DNA of 64,000 nt from Takakia lepidozioides (Eukaryota; Plantae; Bryophyta). The first letter of the stretch is position 1. Every line of letters begins with the position of its first letter. Below are positions 614 to 27,440 of this stretch, in pieces. The translations under genes and the position numbers were made by a program. A model generated the notes under the pieces. The model was not told where the DNA came from, ran no database searches, and worked only from the letters and a program-made list of their open reading frames with translations. Location of the stretch: the NCBI GenBank assembly GCA_030704615.1, contig CM060734.1, positions 21,700,001 through 21,764,000 on the forward strand, read 5' to 3'.

Positions 614-3600
614 TCATAAGGCGTTGTTTGCCGTAGCCTTGTGGCCATTGACCCCGCGCCCAGTTTGAGCGGGAACAAAAGGGACAGAACCTACCTCTGT
701 CAGGGGCTGACGTTGGTAGTAAGACTTACCTCCATATAAAGAATCAATCCGGGTTTTCCAGATATCCTCTAGAAATCCCTTCACACAAGCATCAATCTGC
801 TGTGTGTGATTTGCCCAAAAACTAGGCCACAGGAGGGCCTGGGCTTTTGGCTCAGCCTCGAGACTTTCAAAGTTGGTAAACAGGGGTACAGGCACAATTC
901 CCTTAATAGATTTGAAGAGAGCGTCTCTTTGGTGAGAGAACCCCGGACAGTGTTGCTGTTCAAAGGTAGGCTTCCTGCCCTGAGTTTAAATTTCAGTCTA
1001 GTGCCGAGAGTGGGTAGACCCTTGAGGTCATCCAAGATGTCCTCCCCCATGTCACAGACTGGAAACAAGTTCAGGGAAGTTTTCTGCCTAACTTCATTTT
1101 CATCAGACAATCTCATGGCAACAGACATGGCTGAGGACACTACAGCCTCTAAGTCAGATTTATCCAGCAGGGTCAAGACTTGCGGATCCAGGTCCAGGTC
1201 CTTGAGGATCTCTTCTACTCTCTTCTGCCAGGACTTAGCCTGTTTGACAGGGCGGTCCTGTTTCCAAGATATAGAGTCGATTAATTTAGGATATCTGGTG
1301 TTGGGCATATGTTGCAGCTGACCCCACCATCTGACCTTGAATTCATCTCGTCGGGAGCTTAAGGACGGAATGCCAAACTCACCCCGAACAGCCACATTGG
1401 CTGTTTTGGAGCATGCTGACATACACTCCTTAAGCACCCCCACTTGAATGGATTCTAGAGACTTAGCCTGGTTGGAGTTATCAACCCATATAGCAGATCC
1501 GTACTCCAAGGCAGGTCTAATAACGCGGCAAAGCATGGTTTTCTTAACCTCAGAGTTGACCCCTCTGCAGTGGAAAAATTTAGTGAGCCCCAGAGCTTTG
1601 CCCTTGCCAGTTTGAACAACTTTCCGGATATGTGCATCCCAATTACAATTGGAGGAGAACTCAACGCCCAGGTAAGTGTAGGAAGGGAGGACCGGGATCT
1701 CTTGGCTACCCCACTGCCACTTAAGATCACTTCCTCCCTCTCCTCTGTCGTTGAATGCTACCACTGCACATTTGCTGACATTAGCCTCTAGCCCCCAAAG
1801 ATCAAAGTATCTCTTCGTGCAATCAATCAACTCCTGGAGATTGGTTGGAGTCTCCCCTATGCCTGCGAAGTCATCCGCAAACATAAGGGCTGGTATGGTG
1901 GTATCACCCACCCTTAACCCAAATCCATCACTTTCCACATCCTCTTCTCTGTCACCCTTCTTGTATAGATTGACAATGACCCCCTGTCGCCAGCGAAAGG
2001 GGATCATTTCAGTCTTCCAGATGAGGTTAAAGAGGAGAACTAGGGCCTCTATCATGGGATCGCCACCGTGCTTGATAAGCTCGTTGACAATACCATCAGG
2101 TCCACCAGCTTTATATCCATTTAAATGTTCAATTGCTTCCACAATCTCAGAAGAACTAATGGGAGCATTATAAGCCATTGAAATATACTCCAGTTCATCA
2201 GGGCTGTTTTGAATCATAGGAACAGTTTTTCCAACTGTGTCCCTCCATTCAGCAGAAGACCCCTCACTGTTAGACCTAGAAGTTCTGCCAAGGATACTGT
2301 AGTGAGTTTCAAAGGTTTTGACAATGTCAACCGATGAAGTCACCACTGCACCTTTAGTAGTCTTCAGCGCTTGTACTTGCTGACCGTTTTTTCGGTTTGT
2401 ACAAACGTTGAAGGGCCAACCAGAATTTCTTGTCATTACCACCATGGTGGTTTGAGTTTATTTCACTGTATAACTTGTCCCAGTATAATTTCTTCTGAGA
2501 CCTAACAAGCTGATTGATATCTTTACGGAGCTGGTAGTACCTCGCCCACAATTCTCTGTTGGTTTCCAAATTGCAGCACTCTTTATAGAGGGCTCGTCTC
2601 TCAGCTATCTTGAGTTTAATCTCATTAGTCCACCAATTAACTGCTCTACCGCAGACAATTAGTTTCCTCCCAATGATCTTGTCAGCCACGGAGGAAACGA
2701 AACTCTCCCAAGAGTCCACTGCTCTTTCGACTTCATTTCTTGCGTTAACAGAGCGTGACTGAAGTTCTTGGAGCGATTGGACAAAATGAGGGAGAGCCTC
2801 TTGCAAGGCCTGGACGAACTCAGCCTTGACCTCCTCATTGTGGAATTTTTCTATGCGCCACTTCCGAATCGAACGTTTCACAGATCTCTTGGTGATGGGA
2901 AAACACCTTTTGATCTCAGTCCAAACCAGGAAGTGGTCTGAGGTACCAATATCAGTTCTGTCGATCAACACATTGGCACACTGGGGGAACAAAATTTTGT
3001 CCATTATGATATAGTCCACAATGGAACGTTCCCCAGTTTGGGGTTTCTCACGAGTCCACTGCACTTGGTCACCTCTTGTCCTGTTATTCAAGGTCAAAAG
3101 CTGAAGCTCTTCTAGACAGTTAATTAACCGTCTGCCATTAGAATTCAGGTCTTCCTCACCAAAAGGTCCAATGATATCGTCCTGATGGATCCCTTTGCCC
3201 ACCCGGGCATTGAAGTCCCCCAATAGTACCACCTGACCTATGGCAAGGAACGAAGCACAGTCCAGCTTTACATCTTCGAAGGCCTTGTCTGCGTCAGCAC
3301 TAAGGGTCCCCTCTGTGGGCATGTAAACACAACCAACAAAGAGGTCCTTTGTACTCATGCCGCCCTTCAAATTCAGTTTTAGCCAGATACTATGCTCGTA
3401 CCTCAAACCCTTGTTGATAATTTCACAATTGTCAAACAAGAAATCACGGACAAAGAATCCGACCCCTTTTTGACCGCGTTTGGCAGAGGCTGCCTTGAGA
3501 GTACACATCTTACCTGCCCATTTATAACCAATGACATCTCCAACCAGTTTATCCGACGTTTCCCATGTTTCCTGCCCAGCACAGATATGAATATCATTAG

Positions 3601-4618
3601 TCCAAAGAACTTGGCCCACTTCAAGTTGTTTGGTCAACCCTGAGAAGTTGAAAGTGGCCAGCCGCAAGCCAGCCCTTTGCGTGTGAATTGTTTGTCGTCT
3701 AGGTAGCTTGTGATTGCTCCTGGACGGCCAACCGTTCTGCAAAGGGGTGACAGTTACCCCATGTGTAGATTTTGCTCGTCTTGTGTAAACTTTGAGAATT
3801 GGTAAACCATTCAGGGTACCAAATCTTTCAGTTACACGACGCACAGGCTCCGCACACATAGGGGCAGATTGTCCGTCAGACTGCTTGGAGACAATTACCC
3901 CGTGTATAGATTTTGCTCGTCTTGTGTAGACTTTGAGGATTGGTAAACCATTTAGAGTACCAAATCCTTCAGTTACACGACGTTCAGGCTCTGCACACTT
4001 AGGGACAGATTGTCCATCTGACGGCTTGGGGACAATTACCCCGTGTATAGAATTTGTTCGTCTTGTGTAAACCTTGAGGATTGGTAAACCATTCAGAGTA
4101 CCAAATCCTTCAGATTCAGGACGTTCAGGTTCCGTACACTTAGGGGCATCTTGTCCTTCTGGCTGTTTGGATTCAACCTCATCCAGAGCATCAAACCGAT
4201 TAGAAACTCTCAAGTTGAAGTTGTTGCCCTTGGTTGTCTTCCTAGAGCGCCCCATTGAATCACCAATGTCTAAGACAGCTCTCCAGCCAGTCAAGGGACG
4301 AACTTCTTGGAGATTGAATTGATGCGGGACTCTATTAGAAGCACTTTTGGTCATTGCAACCTTCAACGTACCCCTGTTATCAAGTCTCGAGATGGTACCA
4401 TTAGCCATGAAATCCAAGCCTAAGCTAGAGCATGTAGTTTTAAAGGACACATCGTCCATCCTGGGATTCACCCCAAAAACTACACATGAAGCCCTAGATT
4501 TGGCATAAGTAACCAATTCCCAGGGATCACCCTGAGGAGTGTTGATGTTGATAGGAGCTAAATTTTTGATTGTTTTCGCAGGCCATAAGTTTAAGCACAG
4601 GAACCAACCCGAGCCCAA
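614..4618 (-). pseudogene. LINE ORF (N-terminal repeats + APE endonuclease + RT), frameshifted and internally deleted
   Basis: ORFs 2354-4618 (APE), 781-2445 (RT) and 614-895 (C-terminus FLEDIWKTR) are linked by frameshifts at the T6 run ~2387-2392 and at ~900. The RT jumps from KKGDREE straight to ...LMFADD near 1940. Confidence 0.88.
3750..4160 (-). repeat. Three in-frame 141-bp (47-aa) tandem repeats in the LINE ORF N-terminus
   Basis: TTGGTAAACCATT recurs at 3799, 3940 and 4081. Peptide P(K/M)C.EP.R...E.FGTLNGLPILKVYTRR..S.HGV.V occurs three times. Confidence 0.95.
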
Positions 4619-8800: not shown

Positions 8801-8824
8801 GGGGGTGGTTTCTAGTTGTCTCTT

Positions 8825-9180
8825 TGTCAAGTTAAATAAGCACAGTGTGAAAACAACTAGAATAAAGCTAGTTATTTGTATTTAACACTTGGATTTAGGT
8901 CAAGTGTTAAATCAGGTGTCAAGTTTAGTTTGACACCTGAACCGCCTTATCTTCACGAGAGCGGCAGTCGCGCAGCTCATCTCTCTCGAGTTGAGCCTAC
9001 GCGACCGAGCTCCTGCATCTTTTAGGACTGAGTGTGCTTATGATGGGAGTACAAGTTGTTGTGGGGTGGAGTCCCCATAGCTTGGGGTGCCCCTGGCTCG
9101 ACTTCTGTTTTAACGAGTGATAGCGATGGATTTCATGTTGTTTCTGGTGTGAACAGTGTGTCTCTTAGCTTGTTCTATCA
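8825..9180 (+). repeat. Terminal repeat A1 (354 bp + CA)
   Basis: Near-identical to 20293-20646 (about 8 mismatches by eye). Ends ...TTCTATCA. Confidence 0.95.
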
Positions 9181-9195
9181 CTCGAGAGAGATGAG
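9180..9195 (+). promoter_or_regulatory. Putative self-priming primer-binding site
   Basis: ACTCGAGAGAGATGAG is the exact reverse complement of CTCATCTCTCTCGAGT (8976-8991) inside A1. No TGG-type tRNA PBS is present. Confidence 0.65.
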
Positions 9196-10279
9196 TTTGC
9201 ATCTGTGAGTGCAAGATGTGAGCTTAATTAGTTTTTAGCACTTGTGGGTTTTGTGTGAAGATGAGAGAGAAACACGAGGGTGCAATGGCAAGTTAGGCTT
9301 ATGTGTGTTGAAAGCGGTAACACGAAAGTGCATGGGTATTCTCCCTTTATAACGGTCACTGGCTGAGCGGCAGATTGAGAGCCGAGCATGGTGAAACGAT
9401 CAGCATTATTGTTGTCTCGCAAGGCTGGGATGCAAGCCTTCATTGTCTTGGTGGTTAGAAGCGGAGGTGCAGCTGGTTACGCGAGTAGGTGGACCGTGGT
9501 CTTCGACTTCAGCTGCAGAGATAAAAATACCATGCTATAGGTAATTCCTGAGCAGACTGATGGTTTCAGACCTGCACATAGTGAGCAGCCAAGGTGTTGG
9601 ACTGGTTGATGGGCTCATGTCTACAAGTCGTCGTGCCAATGTTATATCGGTATTGATGACAAACGATTTGGTGAAGTTGTTCATGGCATATATCATGGTG
9701 TGCAATCAGTAAAGACCGAGTTGAGAAGTTGGCTGGCTATCGTTGGTTTTCTTGGTCAGCGAGCAGGGACAGGCTGGCATGAAGGCAGATTGTGCCGTCG
9801 TTGGCTTTCATGTGGAATAGTTACAGCAGAACCGGTGGGAATATTTGTAGTCAAATAAGATCAACAAGCAAGTGAGGCTTGGTGATTATGCTTGAGGAAT
9901 TCGATCTTGGACTTGGACAGGTCTGTAATAATTTTTATAAAAAAATGAGCATGGATGAACTGGCCAAGTGGCGATGGTGTTGTCCTCGATTAGCTGTGGA
10001 TTGCAATAGGACAAGGAGAGCAAGAATAGGGTGATGAAGGGGTGCAGACAACGATACCTAGTTCCATCAAGGCTTGGTTAAGGTCTCCAGGCCTCTTTGC
10101 ATCCATCAACTGTGTGGCTAGAGCCCATAAAGCTTGACTATAGCTGATGTTTTGTTAGAAGATATGGCTCGTAGCCTGCAGAGAACACAAATAACATTGC
10201 CATCCACCACTGGGACTGCATGCTAGAAAGCCATGGAGGCGATGGCACCTGCCATGTAGTTGCCAGTGCAGAAGAGGTT

Positions 10280-10660
10280 GAGGGAGAAGCCATGAAGCAG
10301 CGTCAGCCACGGTAGTTTGATCATCATCCTTCAACAAGTCGCTACATTCAGTTTCAGGCACTGCAGCAACGAAGTTGTTAACGCGGGCCTCTTTTACAAC
10401 ATTCGGACAAAGGAGTGACTGATACATGCTCATGCCGACAGGCAAGTGAGTTGGCTGAATGGATATCTGTGTCGCCTGAAACGCAAAGTGCAGCTATATC
10501 GTCCTTACAAGTGACAACGGCTTGAGCTAGCCCACACACCTCGCACATCCACACACGCCAGCTTGTTTATGCCATGCACCTTGTCATCGCAACCTACACA
10601 CAAAAATGCTGCATCTGCCCTGCAGTACATAGCCATGCTTGACGCATGACAAGACGTGTT
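10280..10660 (-). pseudogene. Captured CONSTANS-like (COL/BBX) gene fragment: tandem B-boxes plus AASWLL motif
   Basis: [33 protein letters not shown], then after a small deletion and frameshift [49 protein letters not shown], then ...DAASWLLPQP. No CCT domain recognised. Confidence 0.85.
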
Positions 10661-11333
10661 TGTGGTAGCCAGGCTTCCTGAACGAGGGAGAAGGACGTCG
10701 GTGCACGTTTGAGGACAGACAATCCCTGCACAGCAACTCCCGAAGTTGAAGATTTCTCCAAAGAACGAGCAGCAATGGCCATAGTTACCAAAACGGCTGG
10801 TAGAGTTGTAACGACCATGCTTGCAAGATAGCATCTCGGATTTAACGAAACAGGTTCGGGATGAACTGACTCCCTTGTCATTCCTTCCAGGATTCTTGCT
10901 GTGAGTGAGATCTTCACATTCTATAAGGGAGGCCGGACGGAGTGGATCGTAGCCCAAGATATTTTCGTGCTGGGAGCTCAAAAATGTTGTTTATAGTGGA
11001 GAACTTAGAATTCGCAGGGAACCAGGGAACAGGGAACCAAGACGGATTATTGGAAATAGATTTTTCATTTGAATGACATATATTTTGTTTAAAGAGCCTG
11101 TTTGGCCATAACTTTGTCATACAAAGGCTGTTTGACCTCAAATTTGCGCGAGGACCTGCAGATTGTGGAAATCTACATATTCAGACCTGGTTTTAGTTTT
11201 TTGGACTCTGCTAAAAATCTATGGAATTTTTTTGAGTGTGAGTGTGTGGATGCTATGAAAGATCCACAATTCTGTTTCAGCTAGAACCTGTTGTGGTCTA
11301 CATGAGAGACAAGTTTGTGGATGTCCTCCTTGT

Positions 11334-12083
11334 ATGGCTGGGGGCAATGAGGACGTAATTGAAGGGCAGGTCTCTTCTCTTAGCCTATGCACACACGGAG
11401 ACAAGATTTATGTTTCTCAAGGAACTCAGACTGATTTGAGTGGAGAGCAGTTGGACGAGTTGATTGCATACTGGGAGTCAGGCATTAGCAATAGACAACA
11501 AACTGTTGTAGTTGGCGTTGAGGGCCTCAATATTGTTTTGGCCAGTTAGAACTCTGTTGGAGCAAGCAGTTCTACAGCTGTAGGTGAAATACCAAAGTGG
11601 GTGAAAGCTAGGCTTGGAACACAGCCAAAGACAGCCTCAAGGACCAAGGTGTTCAGCCACAAGGCCGTGGTGTACTGGAGCAAAGGAGCAGGAGCTGCAC
11701 AAGTTTGTGCAATCAGACATGGTTGCAGCCGGATACGCTCTGCACAAGGCAACCACAAGCGAGGGTTCATTAGCAATGACAAGTTTGTTTTGCTTGAAGG
11801 AGATGCAGTCATTCGCAATGAGGACACCCGCAACCGTCTCAAAGCTTTCGAGTTGAGAGACTATCAGACCCTACCTTTGTTTTCTTTAGTGTTCAATGAG
11901 CGGGAGATAGGGGAGTATTGCTTTGTCTCTACCTGGCAGAAAGAGGAGGAGGGTTGGTTAGAGCGAGCTACTATAGCTTGGGACAAGGTTAGTGGCAGGT
12001 TTCTGGACATAGATATACCTCCTACACCTTACCATCATGCAGAGCGAGGCACTTTGAGAGAAGTCTGGCAGTTGATAGCATAG
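11334..12083 (+). pseudogene. Unknown accessory ORF0 (~249 codons, one in-frame TAG) upstream of gag
   Basis: ORFs 11334-11549 and 11601-12083 are in the same frame and separated only by TAG at 11547-11549. Same strand as gag-pol. No family recognised. Confidence 0.55.
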
Positions 12084-12561
12084 ATCAGGATTAGATCTTG
12101 CTTGGGCGGGCTTCTATTCTTCCCCTCCATCTCTGTACTATTTTCATTACCTTGTACTCGTAGTTGCCAAAGCCTCTCTTGGTGGAGGCCAGTCAGTCCG
12201 GGGTTTTGGGCTGGGATATTCTGCAGGTCAGCACTGCAGATGGATTTTGGTGTGGGGGTGTTGATGTTTTGATTTCTTGTGTTTGGATCCCCCCCAACAC
12301 TTGCATGCTTGACTGTGCGCCATGTTGGTTTTGTGTGGGCGCTTGCTTTCATAGGGATTAGGCCGGATTTGATCACCGGTCAATCCTAGAGTATGTTGTC
12401 GGTGGTGAGGCTGGAGTGATGACCAGCAAGACCACCAGTGTTTCTTCTATGGTGAGACTGGGTTGATGACCAGCCAACCATAGGAGTTCTTGCGGTGGAT
12501 GCAGGTGCAGGTGCCCTGAGCCACTGGGATATGACCCTTAAACTGCAACAGGTGCCTACCC

Positions 12562-14100
12562 GTGTCACTATTAGAATTAGTAATAGAGCCTTATAGTGTC
12601 ACGTGGGGGAGGTGCACATTTGTGAGTGTCATCACGGAGTTACCCAGGGGTTCTGAGGGGAGTACGGCTACAGGCAGTAGAAGTGAGAGTGGGTTCACCA
12701 GACGAGGTGTTCGTTTCAGACCACCTTCACCTCCACCCTCAACTAGTGCAGAGTCAGACACAGACTCGGAGGCTTCATCAACAGGTGTGCAGTTTCATTC
12801 GCCATTGTTGTGGGATGACATGGAGGAGATGTATGGAGCTACCAAGGGGCCTTGTAGGTACTCTGGAGCTGTGGGCACAATCGAGTTGGATGACTTTATC
12901 CAGGAGTTCGACAGCTGGTGTGATTTGCAGCAGATGCGCAATCCACAACTATTCACCCCATTCATGGCGTGGAAGGGACTATTCCAGCATTTGGAAGGCC
13001 CGCCTATGGATGATTACCACGAGTTCAGGCGAGGACATGAAGCAGAGATTGAGGAGTGGAGGATGTATTGGTCACCTGACTACGTCTCCATTACTCGAGG
13101 CACGATGCGACCAGTAGCTGCATCAGTACCAATATCTCCCACTGCCAGCACTAGTAGTGGAGCAAGTAGTGCCGGTACTTCTGCAGGTGGTACCAGTTCA
13201 AAAGGTGCTACTACTCCTCCTGCCACGACTACAACACATGTGCCTAGACTCAACCCGGTGGTGGAGTTCTTCTAGGAGTTACGGAGGAACTACCAAGGTG
13301 TACGGACAGAGAAGCTGCGAAGTTTGCAAGACTTCCAGCGCAAACCCAGTGAGAGCCTGCGAGAGGCGTACACTCGTATGAGGCGCTTGATAAGTGTGAC
13401 CCAAGGGGTTACTGAAGCTCAGGCAATCCAATTTTGGTATGGAATTCTGGACAAGGAGCTCAAGAGAAGGGTGCGAGATGCAACCCTGTTACAAGCAGCC
13501 CAACCCACATTAGCAGATGTGTTTTTGCTGGCTGAGCGGATTGAGCTCAACATGGTGGAGGAGCGAGTTGTTACCATTGGATTTGGCAAGGACATGCCTG
13601 CACGAGGCGCAGCTGCCAGCCCATAGGCACAATGGACTGCCCAACAGCGTGGTCAGGGGGGCAAGGTTTCCCAACCCAAGTTCCATGGAGCTTACAGGGG
13701 ACCTCAGATGCAGATGCCCGTGGCATCTTTTGCAGGCCAACAACAACCAGGGGTGATATGTTGGACATGTGGAGGACCCCATGTCAAGAGAGATTGCCCA
13801 GAGAGTGGCAGAAGGCCGGCACAAGCACAGCCTGCACAGTTGCAGTGTGGGCATTGTGGCAAGTATGGGCATGGAGATGCCCAGTGTTATGACTTGCATC
13901 CTGAGTTGCGCCCAGGCCAGTTCCAAGGGAACAATGGTGGCCGGGGGCAAGGTGGACCAGCCCAGAGAGGACGAGGTGGTCGGGCACGAGGTGCAGGCCA
14001 AGGGCAAGCTCAACATGGCCAAGGACGCGGTGGTCAGGGTATTGACCAAGGCATGGCCAACCGGCTTCAGCAGCTAGAGCAGAGGCTCGTTGCAATGGCT
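12562..14100 (+). pseudogene. gag: Gag (capsid-like region + two CCHC zinc knuckles)
   Basis: LDDFIQEFDSWC; LQDFQRKPSESLREAYTRMRRL; CWTCGGPHVKRDC and CGHCGKYGHGDAQC. One frame with TAG stops at 13273 and 13624. Confidence 0.85.
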
Positions 14101-14759
14101 ATAGCTCAGGCGGTACCAGCTCCCAGGCGGGATGGTCCACCTCCTGCTCATGAGGGAGGAGATATAGGAGGCATGGGATTCACGTGCGGAGCAGCACTAC
14201 CATTAGTGCAGGTGGAGTCTGCTACGGCCGTGACTCGAGGAGCAGCACGAGTTCCTGAGCCACGAGGTGCAGAGGTGGAATTGGATCCACAGCGTGGGGA
14301 GGCAAGCCGTCAGGCAAGGCTTCCTCAGTCATTCACATTGACGGAGACTGTGTCGACGCCATCCATGGCACCTAGTTCTCGCCCGACTGTTACCGAGGCG
14401 GAGGTTACTATGCCATTGGGGAGAGCTACACGTGCAGCACTGACACCTGCTACCAAGGCTAGTGCAGCTGGTGTGTTATTGGGGGCAGCCACCTCTGTGT
14501 GTCAAGCCCCACTGTTCTCGGCAATCATAATTGCGACGCCGGGGGTAAGGCCAGCTGCAGTATTCAGACTAGCAGCAACACTCTGTGAGAGTGAGGAGGT
14601 CACTTCATCTTCTGCGGAGTTACTGGAAGGTGTAGTGGCAGAGGGATCCTCAGATTTGAGGGTCAAGACTGCCACGGCTGCGCCATGGCAAGCTGCAGCT
14701 GCCAGGTTGACGGAACTGCCAGCTAGGCCAGCCTTTGAGCGCGCCATGGTGACACCTGG

Positions 14760-15200
14760 AGTTGTCTTGTTAGACAACCAGGATGGCATTTTCTCTTTGA
14801 GTGGACCGGCAGGCAAGAAGTACCGGCCACTGTGGGTCTTGTTGGACTCGGGAGCTCAGCCACTGATGTTGGGCAGAGCTGCTATTGCAGGTTTGGGCCT
14901 CATATAGGTGGATATGGAGCCTTGTCCTTTCCAGATACAGACATCTCTGGGAGGATCAGAGGATCAGAGGCTCGGGGCATGACACGGCGTGAGTTGGCCA
15001 TTGGACTACAAGCAGATCATCCTGTAGATGGCTCAGTGATGCGAGCCAAGGCCATTGTGACAAACACGGTCTCTTACAATGTCCTCGTTGGTGGGGCAGT
15101 GTTATATCCCATGGGCTTCACCCTGGACTTTTGGGAGGAGTCTGCATCCTACAGGCCTGGATGGCAGTCAGGGGATGGTTGTTGTGCACAGCTCCCTGTG
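14760..15200 (+). pseudogene. Retropepsin-type aspartic protease
   Basis: VLLDSGAQP...YNVLVGG. Interrupted by TAG at 14905 and an 8-bp duplication (GGATCAGA x2, ~14953-14968) whose removal joins the gag and pol frames. Confidence 0.8.
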
Positions 15201-15559
15201 ACATTCATTGGGGGTATTGCGGCTGCCCAACGGGGCAAGATGCCAACACTAGCCGCCTTTACAGCTGCAGTTAGTTGACCTGGAGAGTTGCTGGAGGGCA
15301 ATGCCCATGCAGAGGATGTACCACCTCCAGCAGAGCAGGATGACATGCATGGTATGGCGGAGTTGCCTGCCATGGTTGCTCACACTCCATTGTGGGGTAC
15401 GAGCAAAGATTTGTAGCAGGCTGCTGATGGACGGGTGCAACAAGCTTGGGTAGAAGCTTTCGTACCGTCAGGAGAGGAGGAGAGTGCGGTGATTGCACCA
15501 GGACCACCCCAATTGTCGCCATTGGACACCACACCTCTTGTGTGGCAGTGCCCGGATGA

Positions 15560-16530
15560 AGGCATATGCCTTCTGGACTTGTTTGGCGGGATCAGCACTG
15601 GATTGGCTGCAGTGCTGCAGACAGGTGTACGAGTTCAACGTTACCTATATGTGGAGAGGGATGAGACTGCACGACGCGTCTCACTGCGCCATGTTGATCA
15701 GTTGGTACAGCAGTACCATGTTTTGTTGCCAATGTCTGCAGTTCGTGGATACCAACAAGCCTTGCCAGCAGACATTTCGTTGTTGGGGGCGCAGGATTTG
15801 GAGCAGGTTGGCTCCATTGATCTGGTAGTGGCAGGTTGGCCCTGCCAAGGGCATTCATCAGCCGGGCATGGCAATGGATTGCGAGATTCGAGGACGGGTC
15901 TGTTTTGGGAGATGATGCGGGTTTTGCGCCACTTGCAGCTTCATCAAGCTGTATCTCCAGCATACATCTTGGAGAATGTGCCACTGATGGGTGATTCTCG
16001 GGCCAGGGTGATGGCCAGTGTGCATCAAGTCCGGTCGTGGCTTGGGTCAGCAGTGTTGCTGGATGCAGCTGTAGTGGGGTCACGGGCTCATCGTCCACGG
16101 CTTTGGTGGACTAACTTGATGCCACCCGCACTGCTCAAGCGTGCATTTGATGGGGTGCAGCGGCCAGCACACCTCACCGTGGATGGCATTTTGGACACAG
16201 GGAGGCAGTCTCAACGTGTGAGACATGATGACCATTCGCCTTTGGCAGTGGTCAACAGGATGGGTCAACCACGAGCAGCATTACCTACACTGCTCAGCTT
16301 CCCAGGATCCCATGCTTTTCGGGATGGTGGACCTGGCCTCTTGTGGGATAGCCAGTTGCAACAGTTAGTGGAGCCTAATGCCAACGAGCGAGAGTGGGCT
16401 ATGGGATTTTCCACTGGGACCACGGCGGTGCCTTCTCTTTCTGAGGCATCACGTCGTCAGGTGTTGGGGCAAGCAATGGATCTCAATTGCTTGACCTGGA
16501 TTATCAGCTTGGCTATGGCTGAGCAACGTA
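15560..16530 (+). CDS. C5 DNA cytosine methyltransferase domain (DNMT3/DRM-like) within the polyprotein
   Basis: Motif I LLDLFGGI, IV GWPCQG, VI ENV, VIII AHRPRLWW, IX ERE.AMGF and X LGQAM in ORF 15435-16811. Same frame as RT. Confidence 0.92.
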
Positions 16531-16970
16531 GAGTGCGGAGTGCACTTCCCTTGACGGTCTCTCTGCCTACCGAGACGGTACAGGCAGCGAGTGGGGGTGA
16601 GCCGGTGAGGACCACGGGGTGTAGACATCCATGGCACACGTGGGAGGTGCTCGAGGTTCAGAGGGAGTTGGCAGCCAAGGCAGCTGTGATGGATGAGGTT
16701 GGGGATTCTTCTCGGGATGAGGAGGTTCTCAATGATGAGATGATGGGGCAGGATGAGGCCTTGTCATTGATTGAGCAGGAAGGGAGTACTGCTCAAAAGG
16801 TTGCAGCATAGCAACCACGGGACGCGTCTTCTACCTCTAAGCCCACTAGACTTAAGGTCGCAGTTACGGAGGACAATTGGGAGCCTGACATTGGACCCAT
16901 TGTCACCGGAGGAGAGAGACAATGTATACGGCGGTTCCTGAGGGCTTATAGGAATTGCTTTGCCTTCAGT

Positions 16971-18310
16971 TTGAAGGACTTAGGAGCATTGAAGGGTCAA
17001 GAGATCCGTATTGAGTTGGCCACTGACACGCCAATCTTTCGGAGACCCTATAGATACAGTGACATGGAGAGGTCTTTGATTCAGATGAGGACTCAAGATC
17101 TCTGGGAGGCAGGTTTGGTGGAGCTCTCTGGTGGAGAATATGCTTCAGCCACAGTGATGCCAGCCAAGAAGGATGTCTATGGCAATTGGACGGAGAGACG
17201 TATGTGCGGTGATTACTGGCCTGTAAATCGTCAGACCAAGTCCGATAGGTATGCCATGCCGACACCAAAGGAGATCTTTGATGCCATAGGGCATTCCAAG
17301 GTCTTTAGCACGTTGGATTTACGATCCGGATATCACCAGTTGCCGATCAAGGAGGCGGATAAGCAAAAGACGGCATTCTGGGGGATCAATGAGCACGGGA
17401 AGGATTGCCTATACCAATGGCGGTTCTTACCATTTGGGCTTAAAAATGCTCCCGCTGAGTTTCAAAGAGTCATGGACAAGATTCTAGCAGGGGTGGAGTT
17501 TGCTCGGTGCTACATAGATGACATCATCATCTTTAGTGCTATGGTGGAGGAGCATGAGAGACACCTTCAGGGGGTATTTGAGCGCTTGAGGACGCACGGA
17601 TTGAAGTTACATCCGGGCAAGTGCAAGTTTTTCCACAACCAGATTGAGTATTTGGGTCACATGATATATCCTGGAGGATTGGGGGTACAGCAGACTAAGG
17701 TAGAGTCCATTGCACAGGTTCCACGCCCCACGGATGTGAGCCGAGTTCGAGCTTTCATGGGGTTAGCAAACTATTACAGACGGTTTGTTAAGGGATTTAG
17801 TGCCATTGCAAAGGCTCTAACCAAGCTGACCAAGGTGGACCAGGAGTGGCAGTGGGAAGATGAGCAAAAACAAGATTTTCAAGAGCTCAAGGCGAGGTTG
17901 ACCTCGGCGCCCATCTTGAGACGACCTATCAGGGGGCGTCATTTTCAGCTGCATACAGATTGGAGCATGCTGGGGCTTGGAGCGGTGCTCACATAGGTGG
18001 TTGATGAGGGAAGAGAGTTCGTAGTGGCTTATGCTAGCCGCTCGAACAATGCTGCAGAGTCTAAGTATAGCTCATATGAGGGAGAATGCTTGGTTGCAGT
18101 GTGGGCCGTGGCACACTTCAGGTGCTATCTATACGGCAATCTCTTCACTCTTGTCATGGATCACCAACCACTCAAGTGGTTGATGGAGTCAAACAAGCTT
18201 ACGGGGAAGCTTGCACGGTGGGCACTCATCCTTCAAGAGTATGACTTTCAGGTGGTGCATCGACCGGGTTTGGTCAATCGCAATGCAGATGGGTTGAGTC
18301 ACAATCCATG
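16971..18310 (+). pseudogene. pol: Ty3/Gypsy reverse transcriptase + RNase H
   Basis: RMCGDY, LDLRSGYHQ, LPFGLKNAP, YIDD, YLGH. RNase H motifs HTDWS..GLGAVL, YSSYEGE, DHQPL, NADGLS. TAG at 17994. Confidence 0.95.
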
Positions 18311-18689
18311 CACGAGCCAGCAGGATGACACTGGAGCTCGGTGGCATGGTGAGACGGACGAGGAGATGGTGCCCGGATGGCATGCATCTGCATTTCTGTG
18401 TATCTTGGCAGCGGAAGGCCAGGTTGGACCTGCAACAGGGATGACTATAGATGGAGTGTCTGAGGACCCTGAGGCCAGCAATGAGCAAGGTGGCGCCAAA
18501 GATATACATGAGGATTCAATTGTGTTGGACTACCTCCGCACTGGAGACACTGCAGCCACTGTGACTGCCAAGGAGAGGGATCAGATCCTACAACGAGCCA
18601 AGAGGTTCAAGTGGGAGGGGACACACCTGCTCCGAGTGTGGGAGGATGGTCGAGTGAGGATTGTGCCTCACCCAACACAGCGGGCACGG

Positions 18690-19945
18690 TTAGTGCGGCA
18701 TGCCCATGAGGAGTTGGGGCATTTTGGGATACGACGCACTCATAGTCTACTACAGGGGCAGTATTGGTGGCGTGGTATGCACACAGAGGTGCAACAATTT
18801 GTGGCTAGGTGCATGGTGTGTGACAGGGTGCGTGCTTCATTCAATGCCCCTACTCCACAATTGCACCATCTTCTGATCATGGGATTGGGCTACAGGTGGA
18901 GTCTTGACTTCGCAGGGCCATTGCCACTGACCATGCGTCACAACAAGTACGTGTTGGTGATGGTGGAGCACTTCTCCAAGTGGATTGAGTTGGTTCCATT
19001 GCCTGTGAGGCTAGTGAGGGAGCTGCGTATGCATTCTTGGATTGTGTGCTTAGCCGATTTGGTGCTCCAACTGAGGTACTCACGGACCAAGGGAGAGAGT
19101 TCTTGGGGGAGTTTCAGGCTTTGTGTGACAAGGCCTTGATAGACCACCGCACCACTTCTCGGGATCATCATGAGGCCGATGGCTTGGCAGAGAGAGTTGT
19201 TCAGATAGTAAAGAGGGATTTGTGCAAGTATGGCTTGCAGAAGGGACACCTAGGAGATTGGGACCTTCAGTTACCCTGGTTAGCCATGGGCTACAGGTTC
19301 AGCAAGCAAGCATCACTTGCCTCCTTCTCACCATACTTTCTTCTCTTTGGCCGAGAGCCGGATTTGCCTGCATCCATTTGCAGAGAAGCTGCTGCAGTTC
19401 TTAACCTTGACGATCCGGACGTGTGGGCACGTGCATGTGAGCAGCGTGCAGAGTTGTTCAAGAATGTCATGCCCATGGCTTTCGAAAACCTTGCCATCGC
19501 ACAACACCGTGATACGTTGAGGTATGCTACCATACGTGGTGGGGGCTATCGTCCTGGGGTTCGGAGATTCAACCCTGGTGACTATGTTTACCTGCAGCAG
19601 ACTGCTCCTACGACCTTGGATGTGACTGCAGGACGTGTTATTTTGAGGATTCGAGAGGTTTTGCCCTCAGGCATCTTGGTCTTGAAGGGTCGGGATGGCA
19701 TAACTTGGAAGGACCATGTGCGTAATTGTGTGTCATGTCACCTTCCGAATGTCGATGGCAGGATTGACCCAAACCTGGCACTGGTATCTGCAGGTTTGAG
19801 GTGCATGTTGTGTGGGTCTGCTAGAGGGGCAGCCACCATGCTGGTGTGTGATCGATGCTCTAGAGGTTGGCATATGGGCTGCTTGACTCCACCTCTTGAG
19901 ATGGTTCCGGATGGGGATTGGTTATGTCCACATTGCATTGGATAG
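18690..19945 (+). pseudogene. DDE integrase with C-terminal PHD finger
   Basis: HEELGH..CMVC zinc finger, SLDFAGP, TDQGREF, GLAER. Frameshift ~19005. PHD CMLC..MLVCDRC..GWHMGC..WLCPHC at ~19800-19940. No tyrosine recombinase seen. Confidence 0.93.
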
Positions 19946-20190
19946 TGGGAGTGGATACAACCATGGAGGGCTAACAAGAAACGCAAGGCCAAGCTACTAG
20001 GGGACCTTGAACACACGAGGTCTTGACTCAAGTTCATAGATTGCAAGACGGCAACTAACGATGGGGCTACTCTTGTACCCGGCCTCTTGGTCTATAGAGT
20101 TTGAGTACAACAGGGACAGTGATAGAGGACTTAGTATGGCTGTGGCTATTACATCTTGTAGCTATCTGGAGGTAGAGGGACCTATCCACC

Positions 20191-20205
20191 AGCTAGGGGG
20201 GCGAT
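20191..20205 (+). promoter_or_regulatory. Polypurine tract
   Basis: AGCTAGGGGGGCGAT immediately before TGTGG (start of B1). Same motif in copy 2 (23281-23298, -). Confidence 0.75.
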
Positions 20206-20731
20206 TGTGGCAGACTACTTTATTGTGCATATATGTGTGGTGTGGTTTGGACAGCGCTGTAGTTATGTAGCGATACGTCTGCGCACGACAGCTGTCAAGT
20301 TAAATAAGCACAGTGTGAAAACAACTAGAATAAAGCTAGTTATTTGTATTTAACACTTGGATTTAGGTCAAGTGTTAAATCAGGTATCAAGTTTAGTTTG
20401 ACACCTGAACCGCCTTATCTTCACGAGAGCGGCAGTCGCGCAGCTCATCTCTCGCGAGTTGAGCCTACGCGACCGAGCTCCTGCATTGTTTAGGACTGAG
20501 TGTGCTTATGATGGGAGTATAGGTTGTTGTGGGGTGGAGTCCCCATAGCTTGGGGTGCCCCTGGCTCGACTTCTGTTTTAACGAGTGATAGCGATGGATT
20601 TCATGTTGTTTCTGGTGTGAACAATATGTCTCTTAGCTTGTTCTATTGTGGCAGACTACTTTATTGTGCATATATGTGTGGTGTGGTTTGGACAGCGATG
20701 TAGTTATGTAGCGATATGTATGCGCACGACA
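20206..20731 (+). repeat. Right-end block B1 (20206-20290)-GC-A2 (20293-20646)-B2 (20647-20731)
   Basis: B1 and B2 are 85-bp direct repeats (TGTGG..CGACA, ~3 mismatches). A2 matches A1. Palindrome GACAGCTGTC at 20287-20296. Confidence 0.95.
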
Positions 20732-21034
20732 TCTTGTTTGTGATGATAGCCGTAAGAGAACAAGGCGATGTGAGGTGTATGGCTTTAAAGCATTTATGTA
20801 TAGAGGTGATGGGGAGTTTAAAATTGTTTTGAAGCGCAAAGATGCTCGCATTATGGATGCCGCCTCTGATGCCGGTAGTGATGACGATAAGTGGGCCTGG
20901 CGGATGACCAAGATGAGTGGTGCGTATTTCTGTCATTTTTCGAGAGTGGAGGTGTCGGGAAAGCGGTCATGGCAATAGGTGAATTCAATGAAGTGTATGG
21001 TGAGTGCTTGGGTCGAGTCGATGGGTGGGGGAGT

Positions 21035-22598: not shown

Positions 22599-23451
22599 TG
22601 TCGTGCGCATACATATCGCTACACAACTACATCGCTGTCCAAAACCACACAACACATGTGCACGCCACACACTAGTATATCACTAGTCCACCACTAGTCC
22701 AACCACTAGGCTACAACTAGTCAGTCACGAGGCTGCCACTATGCTGCCCACTATGGCAGTCACTAGTCCACACAATGATAAAGAAGAAAAATACAAGCAC
22801 AAGCTCATGCGAGCTCACAAAGCTGAAGCATAAACTCATGCATATATAACCTCATCACTCAAATACAAGTCAAGCCAAGTGCACCCCACGCCATGGGGAA
22901 TCCACACTATGGCACCATAGCTAGGCGCGGTGAGGCTCAGCTCGAGAAAGATGAGCCTCTTGCGCTTGCCGTGAAGATAACCACTCCAGGGCCTAAATCT
23001 GCCTTGACCCCTGGATTGACACTTGGGCCAATCCCAAATGTCAATATGTAAAAGCTAGCTATTTTCTAGCTAGTTTCACACTAGTGGTAAAATAACTTGA
23101 CAGCTGTCGTGTGCATACATATCGCTACACAACTACATCGCTGTCCAAAACCACACAACACATGTGCACGCCACACACTAGTATACCACTAGTCCACCAC
23201 TAGTCCAGCCACTAGGCTACAACTAGTCAGTCACTAGGCTGCCACTATGCTGCCCACTATGGCAGTCACTAGTCCACACAATCGCCCCCCCTAGCTGGTG
23301 CTTAGGTCCCTCTAAGTCCTGGTAGCCACAAGATGTGATAGTGACAATAGCCTCACTAAGTCCTCCACCATTGTCCCCACTACACTCAAACTTGATAGAT
23401 CAAGAGGCCGGGTGCAAGAGTTGCCCCATCGTTAGTCGCCGTCTTGCAACC
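22599..23451 (-). mobile_element. Right end of a second, diverged split-repeat Gypsy: 3' region-PPT-B1'-GC-A2'-B2'
   Basis: B2' 22599-22774 and B1' 23105-23280 (176-bp direct repeats); A2' ~22775-23102; GACAGCTGTC at 23099-23108; PPT 23281-23298; 23300-23450 homologous to 20040-20190. Confidence 0.92.
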
Positions 23452-23975
23452 TGTGTCCAATGATGCACATTCTCACCATCTCATACAATCATAATTATTC
23501 AATCATTACATTCAGAATTGGATTCACATTCCATCATTCCATTTCTTCACACAAAATAGATTGAATTGAACTTCCTTCTTTTCCTTGTCTTCTTCTATTT
23601 CTCCATACACATCATATTGCAGAATCACATAATTAATCTACCATTGAAAATTACCTTGTCTTCTATTTCCTACACACACACACTCACACACTCTCTCCAC
23701 CTTGGTCACAGCTCATCTGATCTATTGTCCTGCAGCTCAATTATAACAATCTGTCTCAACAACTTCTATAACCGTCTAACTTCTTCTAGTCATCCAGAAT
23801 GTTCGTTCATCCATTTTCTTCATTATCGATTAAAGTTAGACTATTGATCGTCATAAAATATCGAGCAATATTACTATATCGAATCTGTATCGATAGTATC
23901 AGAGAATATATCGAGCAGGAAATGCACTAAATAGTCCTAAAATTAAATCTTAACCAAAATTTCTATTATTCTACA
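23452..23975 (-). mobile_element. Truncated 3' LTR of another Gypsy element, with PPT at ~23976-23990
   Basis: Minus strand AGGAGTGGGGTTA|TGTAGAATAA. 23462-23715 is similar to 61285-61525. Confidence 0.7.
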
Positions 23976-24027: not shown

Positions 24028-26649
24028 CTACCTAATTCCTAGGCTTCTTGGTCTGTCTGCCATCAGGGTCATGCGATCGGCAATGTCGAGCTCGATCAGC
24101 TGCTTCCCTCTGTGCCTTGGTGAACGCAACGTAAGGGTGAAATCGGGATCCCCCCCAATCGTCATAGATCGTAGAATCGGTTGCTGAATAAAACCCGTCA
24201 AGCACATCAATTCAAACACTCGAATCCATCTGGCTGGATGGTGCAATATCTTGGCCACAAGTCCAAACTCATAGCCACCCAACATCGGCTGGTTCACATC
24301 AATGGAAAAACCAAACTGGAGACACCACTTTGCCAACACTCCACAAAAATATCGATGCCATGAAGCACAATGGATCAGTATGCGTCTGGTGGGTGCGATG
24401 GAAATCCTGGTAAGATTTATTACAAGAGTCGAGTGTGTTGAAATCACCTGGGATATACGGCCAATTATAAGGAAATGATACAAGCCCTTCATTTTCCTTC
24501 CATTGACCCCGGCGTGGGCAGGCACACACCCCAAAGCTACCAACAATGCTCTGAGGCCATGGGGTATGGTTTGCTGGTAATCGATTGCCCAACGCAGTAA
24601 GCCATCCTGCAGTGGCAGTATGATGATAGTCCCGCCCCATCCATAACATTACCTCCCATCCAGGCATCATCTTATCGTCTGAATCTCGATAGGCTCGATC
24701 GGGGTCTCCAACAATATCCGAGTGTTCCCAATCAGTGGGGAATCGATAGCGCTCGAATAACCCCATCCCCACCTGAGCAATATCGGCTGTTGTGGGCCAA
24801 TTGATAGACAAGTCCACCGCCCAGTCATCTGTCAAAACCTCTGGCCAAGACTTCGCCTGGAGCCATGATGTCAATCGATTCTTAATAGCTGTCAACGTCC
24901 AGACATATGCAGCTCCATGCAAATCCCTAATGTTACTCCTCCAATACCTGTAATAGGACTTCTCAATCATAATCCGAAACTTCTCCTCCTGTAACACAAT
25001 AGCCACCAAGGCTTGCACCTTCTCCAAATAGGGGGACAATTCCTCTTCCTTAGGCATAGGCAATGCTGACAAAAATGCACAACTTGGGTTTCGATTCCAT
25101 GTGATATTGGCAGTCATCTGTCCCCTCCACGCTTCCAATCAATTTTCTAACTGCTGGTAATACAGAAAGCATCGAGAGGTAGGATCACCTACTGTGGCAA
25201 GGAACTTAGTAGGATCGACCACATCCAGATCGCCCTGAATAATCATTTCTACTGCCAAATTCTCCATCTCATAGTCACACAAGAATGGCCACTCTTCCTC
25301 CAAATCGATGGGCCCTTCTGCTCCATTGAGATCTGCCTTCAAAATATTATTGTCATAAATGTAACCTTGACTGAGTGTGTCAGCATAGCAAACATCCCGC
25401 CAATCGACAAGAATCTGGGTCCCCAACAAAAATGGAGCCTGCACTGGAGTCTCTCTCAATTGGTCCAACTCCTCCAATTGTGCCTTACCAGCACTTTCCA
25501 ATTCTCTCATATCACCTTCAGCCATCAATTTGAACTTTGCAAAGGCTGTTTCCAATTCTTTATACCTTGCATCTGGATCTGCTTGCTCAGCAGGTCGTTT
25601 CTCCAACTCTGCTTGCTGTCGTAATGCCTCAGTCAATTGCTGCTCCAATTCGGCAATTCGATTGTCCTTATGTTGCGATCGATTGGCTTGCAGCTGAATC
25701 AAATCGTCCTTGTCGGCAATTGTGTTCACATATTGTGCCTCCTTCCCTCTCCACTTTTCCTTGATTGCCTGGAGCTCCTTGGCATCAGCATCCGATTTCT
25801 TCTTCAATTCATCCCATCCTCACTACCAGGTTGCAAAGACGCATTGTAAAGGAAGGGTTTGTCTGACTCCCTACATCCTTGCCTGCAGAAGCAACGATAG
25901 CCATGTTTGCATTGGGGGCTGCACTGATCTTCTCCCCTTGAGCACTGGACTCAGCGTTGTTTGTCCTTGGCACCTCAACTTCATCGGGAGGGGGTACTTC
26001 CAATCGATACTGAAATGATCATAGAAAGATAATTCGCACAGAGCAGACTGTCAGCCTTCGATGCCCGCCTCTTTTGGAACAACTCTTCATGAATTTTTCC
26101 ACATAAGAACTCGGCCCAATTGAGACACAAGCCTTCATACGATGCTATTGCCGCATTCAATTGCCTACCCGCTACATAAGTAGCAAATTTCTTCAATGTC
26201 AATCGGCTTACTACAAATTTCAACCATTCCATCAGCTCCGGACTCATCGCTTTGGCAATTGTCCAACCTCCTGTTTGATTGCATGCGTCCGGCTTGAAAT
26301 AATTGTCCGGATTGAAATTTTCATCTCTGAAACCATCAACCTCTCCTTCTGCTCCAGGTACTTTGAGAATCTCTGTAATTGTGCGTGCATCCACCATAAT
26401 TTCCACTCCATTGACAATACCACTCCTTCTATTATGATCGTAGATGCGATAATACTGCATCACTACCGCCATGATCGGCTTCGGCAGAGTAGCAGATAAG
26501 AGCAAAAACTCAAACAATGTTGACTGTCTCCACTTCTGTTTCTGTGCAGTATTGCCCAAAATCAATGGAACGTCGCAGAATTTCAACTCTGCTGCCATTA
26601 TCCCAACTGCCGGTGGTAATTGTGGTATCACCTTCCCTCCTGTCGGCAT
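24028..26649 (-). pseudogene. Large extra ORF of a Tat/Athila-like Gypsy (plant-transposon/mobile-domain-like N-terminus, coiled coil, unknown C-terminal domain)
   Basis: Consecutive minus ORFs 25981-26649, 25809-26003, 25139-25807, 24299-25138 and 24028-24546, directly upstream of the PPT/LTR. Motif CLNWAEFL..KIHEEL. Family call is inference. Confidence 0.6.
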
Positions 26650-26766
26650 CGTGCGTTAAAAAAGAAACAGCTTCACAGTCAATCAATCGCTCTTCACACT
26701 TGAACACTGCACAGCGCTTACCTCTTAACCAGAAAGAGAAAAATCGACAATTGACAATGAGGGACT

Positions 26767-27440
26767 CACTACAGGAAAAGGGGGGCTTTTGCGACGCCGC
26801 GGCGTCAGAAAAATGCCCATCCCAAGCACGGGGCAGGTGCCTTATTTGCGACGGCCGGCCGTCGCCAAAAAGAGGTCGCAAAAATGCGACGTATGGGGGT
26901 CATGAGCCCCCGCCCCAACTCCCGCGACTGCTGGACGTCGCTTTTCGGGCCGTCCACGCCGATGGCAGGGGCGAGCGACGACTCGCCGTCGCTGCCCTCC
27001 AGCCGACGACATTGGTGGGGGCGACGGCGCGGCGTCGCATCCCCTTTTTTTCTAACCTGCCCGGGAGTCCCATCCTAAAATCCAAAACACGTGGCGTAAG
27101 CCGGGTGGTACGCCAGTGCGTCGCTGCAAGCGACTATTGGGCGTGGCAAAAAAAAAAACAGAAGGAGCTGGAGTCGGGCTCCACGATGCCCGTGCATGAG
27201 TTCCCGCGACGGTTTGGCGTCGCTTTCTATATATTCAATCAAAAAATAAAAACACATGGCGTAGGCAGGGTGGTGGGATCCGTGACGCCAGGGCGTTGTG
27301 GCTTGCGACCCCCGGACCCAAAAAACCCGGGGGGGTCGGGTGTTGCTGCCTGTAAAAGGGATTTGCGACGCCGGGGCGTCGCGGCTTGCGACCCCCGCCA
27401 AAAAAACCCGTCGCCAATGCCGACGCCCTGCAGTCGCGAG
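26767..27440 (+). mobile_element. CACTA (EnSpm) left terminus with GCGACG/CGTCGC subterminal repeats
   Basis: CACTACAGGAAAAGGGGGG at 26767 followed by many GCGACG/CGTCGC motifs in both orientations. Confidence 0.85.

Follow-up and report, generated by a model that had tools for sequence, protein, structure and literature searches.

A decayed Ty3/Gypsy retrotransposon of Takakia lepidozioides with split direct repeats, integrated as a circular permutation of its reverse transcription product

How does a Ty3/Gypsy retrotransposon that encodes a DDE integrase come to lie in a chromosome between split direct repeats instead of two complete long terminal repeats (LTRs)? The question is raised by a 64,000-nucleotide stretch of the genome of the bryophyte Takakia lepidozioides (GenBank assembly GCA_030704615.1, contig CM060734.1, positions 21,700,001 to 21,764,000 of the forward strand), which we refer to as the window and number from its first letter. 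The element in question, el1, occupies window positions 8825-20731 (+) and has the order TCTT-A1-PBS-gag/PR-DNMT-RT-RH-IN-PHD-PPT-B1-GC-A2-B2-TCTT, where TCTT is the target site duplication (TSD), A and B are the two parts of the LTR, and PBS, PR, DNMT, RT, RH, IN and PPT stand for primer-binding site, protease, cytosine DNA methyltransferase, reverse transcriptase, RNase H, integrase and polypurine tract (Table 1). We conclude that el1 is a decayed bryophyte Ty3/Gypsy LTR retrotransposon of the streptophyte Gypsy-DNMT3 lineage, and that it is integrated as a circular permutation of the product of its reverse transcription.

The TCTT duplications, the split repeats, the palindrome and the ends TGTCA and CGACA, all claimed in the initial annotation of this DNA, are present in the sequence. 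The element opens with TGTCA at 8825-8829 and closes with CGACA at 20727-20731, such that its integrated ends are of the TG..CA type and abut a 4-bp TSD, as is characteristic of Ty3/Gypsy elements (TG..CA with TSDs of 4-6 bp). The two complete and identical terminal LTRs that also characterise these elements are lacking, with A only on the left and B-A-B on the right; the position of the boundary between A and B carries a 2-nt ambiguity. Within the window, the 12-mer CGACAGCTGTCA is confined to the two B-A junctions, at 20286-20297 (+) in el1 and at 23098-23109 (-) in a second, diverged copy (el2), and the chance expectation in the 64-kb window, allowing at most one mismatch, is 0.21 matches.

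Table 1. Coordinates of el1 and of related features in the 64,000-nucleotide window
Feature	Position	Strand	Remarks
Left TSD, TCTT	8821-8824	+	same as 20732-20735
A1: 3' part of U3 (degenerate TATA region near 8945), R and U5	8825-9179	+	97.7% identity to A2
Self-primer segment AGCTCATCTCTCTCGAGT, then conserved TGAGCC	8974-8991	+	complementary to 9180-9197
PBS, Tf1-type self-priming, ACTCGAGAGAGATGAGTT	9180-9197	+	complementary to 8974-8991
Leader without recognisable gene	9198-12274	+	open reading frames (ORFs) tested without Pfam match; homology to L001 begins only at 12275
gag and presumed protease region, decayed	12535-14904	+	weak Retrotrans_gag match; in-frame TAG at 13273 and 13624; homologous to L001 8074-10579
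C5 cytosine DNA methyltransferase domain inside pol	15417-16808	+	PF00145, E = 2e-12
RT and RNase H	16812-18240	+	RVT_1, RT_RNaseH, RT_RNaseH_2
Integrase, H2C2 zinc domain and D,D35E core	18670-19500	+	Integrase_H2C2, rve; frameshift near 19000
C-terminal PHD finger	19802-19942	+	PF00628, E = 6e-11; also in P0100, P0108, P0110, P0114
PPT AGGGGGGCG	20195-20203	+	directly 5' of B1
B1: 5' part of U3, CGACA at its end	20204-20290	+	96.6% identity to B2
Palindrome GACAGCTGTC (GACA-GC-TGTC), proposed internal attachment site	20287-20296	+
GC spacer between B1 and A2	20291-20292	+
A2: second A copy, without last 3 nt (ATC) of U5	20293-20644	+	matches A1 8825-9179
B2: second B copy, CGACA closes the element	20645-20731	+	matches B1
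Right TSD, TCTT	20732-20735	+	identical to left TSD
el2, 3' end of second diverged copy	22599-23455	-	internal remnant, remainder missing; PPT 23292-23283, B1 23282-23105, GC 23104-23103, A2 23102-22777, B2 22776-22599
Isolated integrase fragment, third copy	59469-60456	-	80-90% identity to 18923-19700; no repeats nearby

Related loci (L numbers) were fetched around proteins related to the element (P numbers), and six complete copies with both ends are available, el1 included. Other assemblies with members of the family are those of Calypogeia fissa (GCA_965154635.1), Sphagnum troendelagicum (GCA_963970355.1), Riccia sorocarpa (GCA_046195345.1) and Marchantia. The full form, A-int-B.GC.A-B (int, internal part), is found in el1, in L005 from Calypogeia fissa (TSDs AATG and AATG), where the GC spacer is mutated to AC, and in L003 from Sphagnum troendelagicum (ATTC and ATTC). 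A second C. fissa copy, L001 (AGGT and AGGT), reads A1-int-PPT-B1-GC-A2-B2-GC-A3-B3, and two copies have the unit-length form A-int-B: L021 on a Sphagnum-type scaffold (AATT and AATT) and L023 from S. troendelagicum (GCTT and GCTC). Exact 4-bp TSDs abut the TGTCA.. and ..CGACA ends in five of these six copies, and the sixth, L023, matches at three of four positions; the probability of five exact 4-bp matches by chance is ~1e-12. The proposal in the initial annotation that the chromosomal ends are the two halves of the palindrome, with the central GC lost and a 4-bp TSD made, therefore applies to el1 and to the other copies alike. The right-end order PPT-B1-GC-A2-B2 is present in addition in el2, in L004 from Riccia, in L008 and L009 (moss-derived metagenome contigs), and in L028, a moss-like contig in a cyanobacterial metagenome-assembled genome (MAG), in which B1 and B2 are 100% identical. 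A map of all A and B matches across all loci contains neither a B upstream of A1 nor a conventional BA..BA copy, a predominance of which would, according to the initial annotation, refute its reading. Chance and assembly artefact are ruled out as its source by the recurrence, with TSDs, in independent copies from other species and genera, and the split-repeat layout is a family trait.

The comparison is bounded by the loci at hand. L011-L020 are a single locus sampled across many metagenomes and contribute no independent copies, and L022 and L026 are nested or rearranged, such that only the junction sequence was used from each. The order int-PPT-B-A-PBS-int in L025 and L027 was left uncounted as evidence of circles or tandems because short-read assemblers yield this path whenever A1 and A2 are the same. 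The B/A structure is not recognisable in the Marchantia locus L002 or in L024, a contig with an intact ORF. One metagenome scan gave five loci and a scan of genome contigs gave two moss-like contigs within a cyanobacterial MAG; a scan of viral contigs for the family gave no match.

The unit that reverse transcription would define is not the one found between the TSDs. The PPT sits in a block, CCAGCTAGGGGGGCG, that immediately precedes B and is kept in seven of seven aligned copies, and A1 is followed by a PBS complementary to a segment within A itself. From the positions of this self-primer PBS and of the PPT, the U5 region ends at 9179 and the U3 region starts at 20204; with the PPT before B1 and the PBS after A1, the LTR built by reverse transcription must be B+A, and its linear product should be BA-int-BA. 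The initial annotation had correctly recognised B+A as this unit but delimited it as TGTGG..TATCA. Because the PBS starts at A9180 the unit must end at 9179 with TATC, and it runs from ATTGTGG (20204) to TATC (9179). These ends are unconserved across copies, and in Calypogeia they are GTTGG..CGTTT, not TG..CA.

Several features of A point to self-priming. An alignment of seven B-A units has four conserved blocks, namely the PPT block, the final ~50 nt of B plus the adjoining GC-TGTCA, GGGGTATA in A, and the primer with GTTGAGCC; the primer segment in these units is short and variable, and is then followed by GTTGAGCC. Primer and PBS are complementary over 12-18 nt, with compensatory changes in five lineages: the pairs are AGTTCTCTAAGT and ACTTAGAGAACT in Calypogeia L001, AGTTCTCCAAGT and ACTTGGAGAACT in Calypogeia L005, AGTTCTTCAAGT and ACTTGAAGAACT in Calypogeia L022, and AGTTCTTTGAGT and ACTCAAAGAA.. 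in Sphagnum, in addition to the el1 pair in Table 1. In relatives a TATA box lies inside A, 31 nt upstream of the primer segment, and the PBS base-pairs with the 5' segment in predicted RNA folds (for el1, z = -4.8). We infer that transcription most likely starts ~30 nt downstream of the TATA box within A and that the primer segment is probably the 5' end of the transcript; with the start so placed, the predicted priming in the el1 family is of the Tf1/sushi type. Since the core promoter lies in A, A1 alone should be able to drive transcription.

The joint between A2 and B2 is informative as to what happens to the cDNA. In L001 (at both of its joints), L003, L005, L008 and L009, the five copies for which both ends can be deduced, it fuses the inferred end of U5 to the inferred start of U3 without gain or loss; in el2, L004 and L028, where the U5 end of the copy itself is not at hand, the B side begins precisely with U3. 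Only the el1 joint departs from this, lacking 3 nt (ATC) and showing AT microhomology, and the slight variation of the joints that had been anticipated was not borne out, most of them being exact. To judge by its sequence, the joint looks like the junction of a 2-LTR circle formed from unprocessed, blunt cDNA.

The last ~50 nt of B with CGACA-GC-TGTCA form the best-conserved part of the LTR, and a palindrome of the GACA-GC-TGTC type stands at each of the B-A junctions examined, whether from liverworts, mosses or Haematococcus. When a Riccia RH-IN piece was searched against 1.84 billion representative proteins, many relatives were returned at 45-55% identity, with one cluster from Haematococcus lacustris, and the relatives examined are CCHC-DNMT-RT-RH-IN or RT-RH-IN-PHD polyproteins. 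The best-match contig, L025, a PHD-Gypsy from a metagenome, has a PPT, a B ending CCGCGACA, the GC, and an A starting TGTCATGCAG; the Haematococcus locus L026 has ACAACGCGACA-GC-TGTCACAAC downstream of a PPT-like tract. As the junction is common to bryophyte and Haematococcus elements, the internal palindrome appears to be older than the split between chlorophytes and streptophytes. It is quite possible, if not quite probable, that there is an ancient clade of PHD-finger Ty3/Gypsy elements, composed of the bryophyte DNMT elements and chlorophyte relatives, in which the attachment site has moved into the LTR palindrome and joined-LTR cDNA (a 2-LTR circle) is the normal precursor.

Two side observations concern these sequences. 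Within window 20240-20290 a CGAT(R)T(R)TGT-like motif occurs twice, right in front of CGACA, whereas on the A side only TGTCA is kept, and these motifs may be a candidate binding site for the integrase or a host factor. In the related proteins P0108, P0110 and P0114, RNase H is separated from the integrase zinc domain by an insert of 600-750 aa for which Pfam gives no match.

The coding content agrees with the claim that el1 is a Gypsy element with a DDE integrase and without a tyrosine recombinase. The domain order RVT_1, RT_RNaseH, Integrase_H2C2, rve is that of Ty3/Gypsy pol, and the closest solved relative of the el1 RT and RNase H is Ty3 (Gag-Pol 7q5b). The canonical D,D35E integrase triad, LDF..TDQG..(35 residues)..LAER, is kept in five copies (el1, Riccia, Sphagnum, Calypogeia) and aligns with the Ty3 integrase of 7q5b. 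No tyrosine recombinase domain (Phage_integrase, PF00589) was found in the tested ORFs of the element and its leader on both strands, a scan short of an exhaustive six-frame one, and the compact Calypogeia copy L001 has no space for such a gene. The methyltransferase domain lies within the Pol polyprotein, as in Gypsy-DNMT3 (KnitGypsy-Dnmt3) elements, between the gag/PR region and RT, and this piece is 66-72% identical to proteins of Calypogeia fissa, Marchantia, Riccia and Sphagnum, and 90% identical to one Logan fragment. Taken alone, these matches would place the host among the bryophytes, probably in the liverworts. For the gag and presumed protease region, relatives carry zf-CCHC and Asp_protease_2 domains.

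The explanation that we favour, and hold to be rather probable, is that the integrase most likely cuts the internal LTR palindrome of cDNA in which one LTR is joined to another, most simply a 2-LTR circle. Self-primed reverse transcription would yield linear BA-int-BA, the two ends of which would first have to be connected, in the simplest case through end-joining that closes a 2-LTR circle. The D,D35E integrase would then nick 3' of CA on both strands at the palindrome in the LTR that adjoins the PBS. Such a double nick at CGACA-GC-TGTCA would leave a 2-nt staggered break, each end with its CA-OH recessed behind a 5' overhang of GC, the form that 3'-processed retroviral ends have, and strand transfer with a 4-bp stagger followed by repair would remove the GC and create the TSDs. 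The B1-GC-A2 segment, lying within the transcribed region, would pass the site on and be the source from which it is regenerated in both LTRs each cycle, and A-int-B products, without a 3' R, would be dead ends. There is precedent for the chemistry, as the integrases of prototype foamy virus (PFV) and human immunodeficiency virus type 1 (HIV-1) are reported to cleave the palindromic LTR-LTR junction, and 2-LTR circles are reported to be able to feed integration (PMC1180852, PMC1905944, PMC4372172).

The proposal in the initial annotation that el1 came from a 2-LTR circle stands in so far as the A2-B2 joint is a fusion of U5 end and U3 start; as regards the closed circle itself it stays a proposal, as a concatemer or a jump of RT would give the same joint. 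The evidence reaches as far as an integrase cutting the internal palindrome in LTR-LTR-joined cDNA, and we infer the closed circle beyond that as its simplest source. Several points weigh against the circle. The joint-bearing intermediate is deduced entirely from integrated copies, and all copies examined are decayed, such that activity of the family can at most be presumed. A 2-LTR circle has two identical palindromes, and the sequence offers no reason why only the one adjoining the PBS should be opened; the A-B-A-int-B product that is predicted is absent from the six complete copies, although six make for a weak test. The arrangement of L001, A-int-(B.GC.A)x2-B, suggests a three-LTR intermediate, which is unexpected from a simple circle. 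Finally, the near-always exact joints fit blunt end-joining and an end-to-end jump of RT equally well.

Some of these same points bear on an alternative that retains both the attachment site and the integrase chemistry, and differs in how the joint is made: it would arise in a linear head-to-tail concatemer (BA-int-BA joined to BA-int-BA), or by a jump of RT from the U5 end to another U3 start, with the integrase pairing the TGTCA half-site of the first LTR with the CGACA half-site of the LTR past the joint. Exact U5-end/U3-start joints are what an end-to-end template jump is expected to leave, a linear substrate would explain the missing A-B-A-int-B, and the three B copies of L001, with an extra unit as old as the insertion, are easier to produce by repeated jumps or multimers. 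However, an early unequal crossing-over could equally make a single three-unit copy, and the loss of 3 nt at the el1 joint resembles end-joining. End-joining within the molecule into 2-LTR circles is, moreover, a well-documented fate of unprocessed retroviral and retrotransposon cDNA, and we know of no concatemer or jump product documented for Gypsy elements; we regard this source of the joint as unlikely but deserving of attention. A one-LTR circle as the usual substrate seems improbable to us. Opened at its single palindrome it would give A-int-B, with A-int-BAB as the rarer by-product that alone is able to replicate, and two of the six complete copies are indeed A-int-B (L021 with an exact TSD, L023 with the 3-of-4 match); one-LTR circles also usually outnumber two-LTR circles for retroelements. 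But recombination between B1 and B2 in an integrated A-int-BAB gives A-int-B as well, such that L021 and L023 do not discriminate, and this alternative refines the relative frequencies within the model that we favour rather than contradicting it.

Two further explanations were weighed. Split direct repeats of the form A1..B1A2B2 are a hallmark of PAT and Ngaro elements, a likeness also remarked by de Mendoza et al., and would be accounted for if a tyrosine recombinase acted in trans on a circular intermediate, as in DIRS/PAT/Ngaro-like mobilisation, with the DDE integrase vestigial. This is very improbable given that the Phage_integrase domain is found in none of the tested ORFs and the compact Calypogeia copy is too small to encode one, that conservative site-specific recombination does not make TSDs of the kind seen exactly in five copies and the ends are TG..CA, and that the D,D35E triad and H2C2 domain are kept across mosses and liverworts together with a Ty3-like RT and RNase H. 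The other explanation, that nested insertion, unequal recombination or misassembly turned an inserted element of ordinary BA..BA form into the present one, or that its 5' LTR was truncated, draws on the facts that all copies are old and mutated and that nested or rearranged copies exist (L022, L026). We find it hardly credible, since breakpoints identical to the nucleotide, with TSDs, recur in independent insertions from at least four genera in separate assemblies, and B is never upstream of A1.

The el1 copy is dead. Six in-frame TAG or TGA stops (13273, 13624, 15276, 15414, 16809 and 17994) interrupt it in addition to the frameshift near 19000, and its base context is depleted of CpG with TG/CA in excess. 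An alternative genetic code was considered for the stops and ruled out: the mixture of TAG and TGA, the frameshift, and the CpG depletion with TG/CA excess fit decay by methylation. The VVVDRFSK of the Ty3 integrase core corresponds to VMVEHFSKW in all copies, a lineage-specific, non-catalytic change of Asp to Glu adjoining the first catalytic Asp. The leader from PBS to gag is ~3.1 kb in el1 as compared with ~0.9 kb in Calypogeia L001 (~2.2 kb longer), through either a nested insertion or expansion.

Other copies show features of their own. In L001 the extra B-GC-A unit is at 15454-16429, giving three B and two internal A copies; A2 and A3 differ at 8 positions and A1 and A2 at 6, such that the extra unit has diverged as much as A1 and A2 have from each other, and it may date from the insertion itself. 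In L003 (5741-6078) A1 and A2 have 32 differences, nearly all of them C>T or G>A in A1, and B1 and B2 have 3. This divergence was considered as a clue to mechanism and set aside, since hypermutation (C>T and G>A) confined to A1 accounts for it; the promoter-bearing 5' repeat of L003 seems to have been hypermutated selectively. The second window copy, el2, has ~70-74% identity to el1 in A and ~90-95% in the last 58 nt of B. Its B is stretched to 178 nt by ACTAGTG-like repeats, and its internal part ends at 23455/23456, the start of a different repeat that is also found at 61278-61420. L027 (CADCWO010000201.1) and L028 (CADCWO010000148.1) place a plant retrotransposon in the MAG of an 'uncultured Synechococcales cyanobacterium', which is moss-like eukaryotic contamination, and P0028, a protein labelled Candidatus Obscuribacterales, is a similar case.

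Elsewhere in the window, 781-4618 (-) holds a LINE-type (long interspersed nuclear element) sequence with two long ORFs that have weak endonuclease-reverse transcriptase and RVT_1 matches. A GC-rich block at 24299-30006, in which GC reaches 55% and the GC skew is negative, has several ORFs of 220-360 aa without Pfam matches and is probably another repeat. The region 30223-35867 contains direct repeats of ~600 bp, at 30223-30818 and 33326-33927, 3.1 kb apart, and at 33928-35867 a 1051-bp unit stands in tandem with 100% identity, with an older related copy at ~31925-32785.

For retroviruses and LTR retrotransposons the usual view is that linear cDNA is the substrate of integrase and that 2-LTR circles are by-products and dead ends. 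The sequence logic of the el1 family seems to need the opposite, in that the ends made by reverse transcription are never the chromosomal ends and a U5-U3 joint is present in every full copy. If this is true, the family would be a natural system for integrase cleavage of an internal palindrome and would explain the independent rise of split direct repeats in DDE and in tyrosine-recombinase retroelements. The ancient clade considered above, were it real, would show in nature the circle-junction route that was put forward for retroviruses and later given up, and would be a DDE group that had converged on the tyrosine-recombinase retroelements. Programs that find LTR elements by expecting two equal TG..CA LTRs with outer TSDs should mis-delimit, mis-date or miss such elements in bryophytes and algae. 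Self-priming and the PHD finger are additions to the description of the methyltransferase-carrying Gypsy lineage.

The odd repeats of this lineage had already been noticed, and the suggestion that no described Gypsy lineage is so arranged has to be narrowed accordingly. The legend to Fig. 4c of de Mendoza et al. 2018 (PMC5890265) describes the repeats of KnitGypsy-Dnmt3 of Klebsormidium as DIRS-like, A-coding region-B-A-B, and its domains as Gypsy; neither ends nor TSDs, a palindrome, a mode of priming or a mechanism of integration are given there. The name streptophyte Gypsy-DNMT3 is used in a 2026 preprint (bioRxiv 10.64898/2026.05.21.726589). Full-text literature searches, on split direct repeats with integrase and Gypsy and on the family names, returned no published mechanism and nothing beyond these two sources, and the part of the claim that concerns mechanism holds as far as we found. 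What appears to be undescribed is the logic of the attachment site, together with the TSDs, the exact joints, the self-priming and the deep conservation.

KnitGypsy-Dnmt3 resembles el1 as a Ty3/Gypsy element with a methyltransferase domain in pol and A-coding-B-A-B repeats; it differs in its host, the charophyte Klebsormidium as opposed to bryophytes, the comparison being with its description and not with the K. nitens sequence. Gypsy-7a_cRei of Chlamydomonas is described as a PHD-finger Gypsy active in laboratory strains, with LTR 'subparts' and with the last 8 bp of the right LTR absent from the left (Craig et al. 2022, PMC9940879). If B were very short, the same phenomenon could leave such an asymmetry, a lead taken from the description alone. 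Tf1 and sushi elements share with el1 a transcript 5' end (predicted in el1) complementary to a PBS after U5 and an adjacent second stem (GTTGAGCC with GGCTYGAC), but Tf1 has conventional full LTRs and a chromodomain, whereas el1 has permuted termini and a PHD finger as its C-terminal module.

The closest parallels in layout and in chemistry lie in different systems. PAT-like and Ngaro elements (DIRS order) have the same A1-int-B1A2B2 arrangement, with an internal B1-A2 that copies the joined termini and an inferred circular or joined-end intermediate, but they rely on a tyrosine recombinase, leave no TSD and carry an RT of the DIRS type, unlike el1 with its DDE integrase, 4-bp TSDs, TG..CA ends and Ty3-type RT and RNase H. 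Copy-out-paste-in transposition of IS3, IS30 and IS911 is like the proposed route in that its substrate is a circle in which the abutted ends, with a spacer of 2-3 bp, are acted on by a DDE enzyme. These insertion sequences are bacterial DNA transposons that undergo no reverse transcription and take the spacer from the DNA that flanks them, whereas the GC spacer of el1 would be inherited via RNA. The cleavage of 2-LTR junctions in PFV and HIV-1 is also similar, as a DDE integrase cuts a ..CA-NN(NN)-TG.. palindrome on both strands and the product can be integrated. In retroviruses, however, the palindrome is the newly made LTR-LTR joint and its use is a side path, whereas in the el1 family the palindrome lies within each LTR, the new joint would be left uncut, and the route is apparently obligatory.

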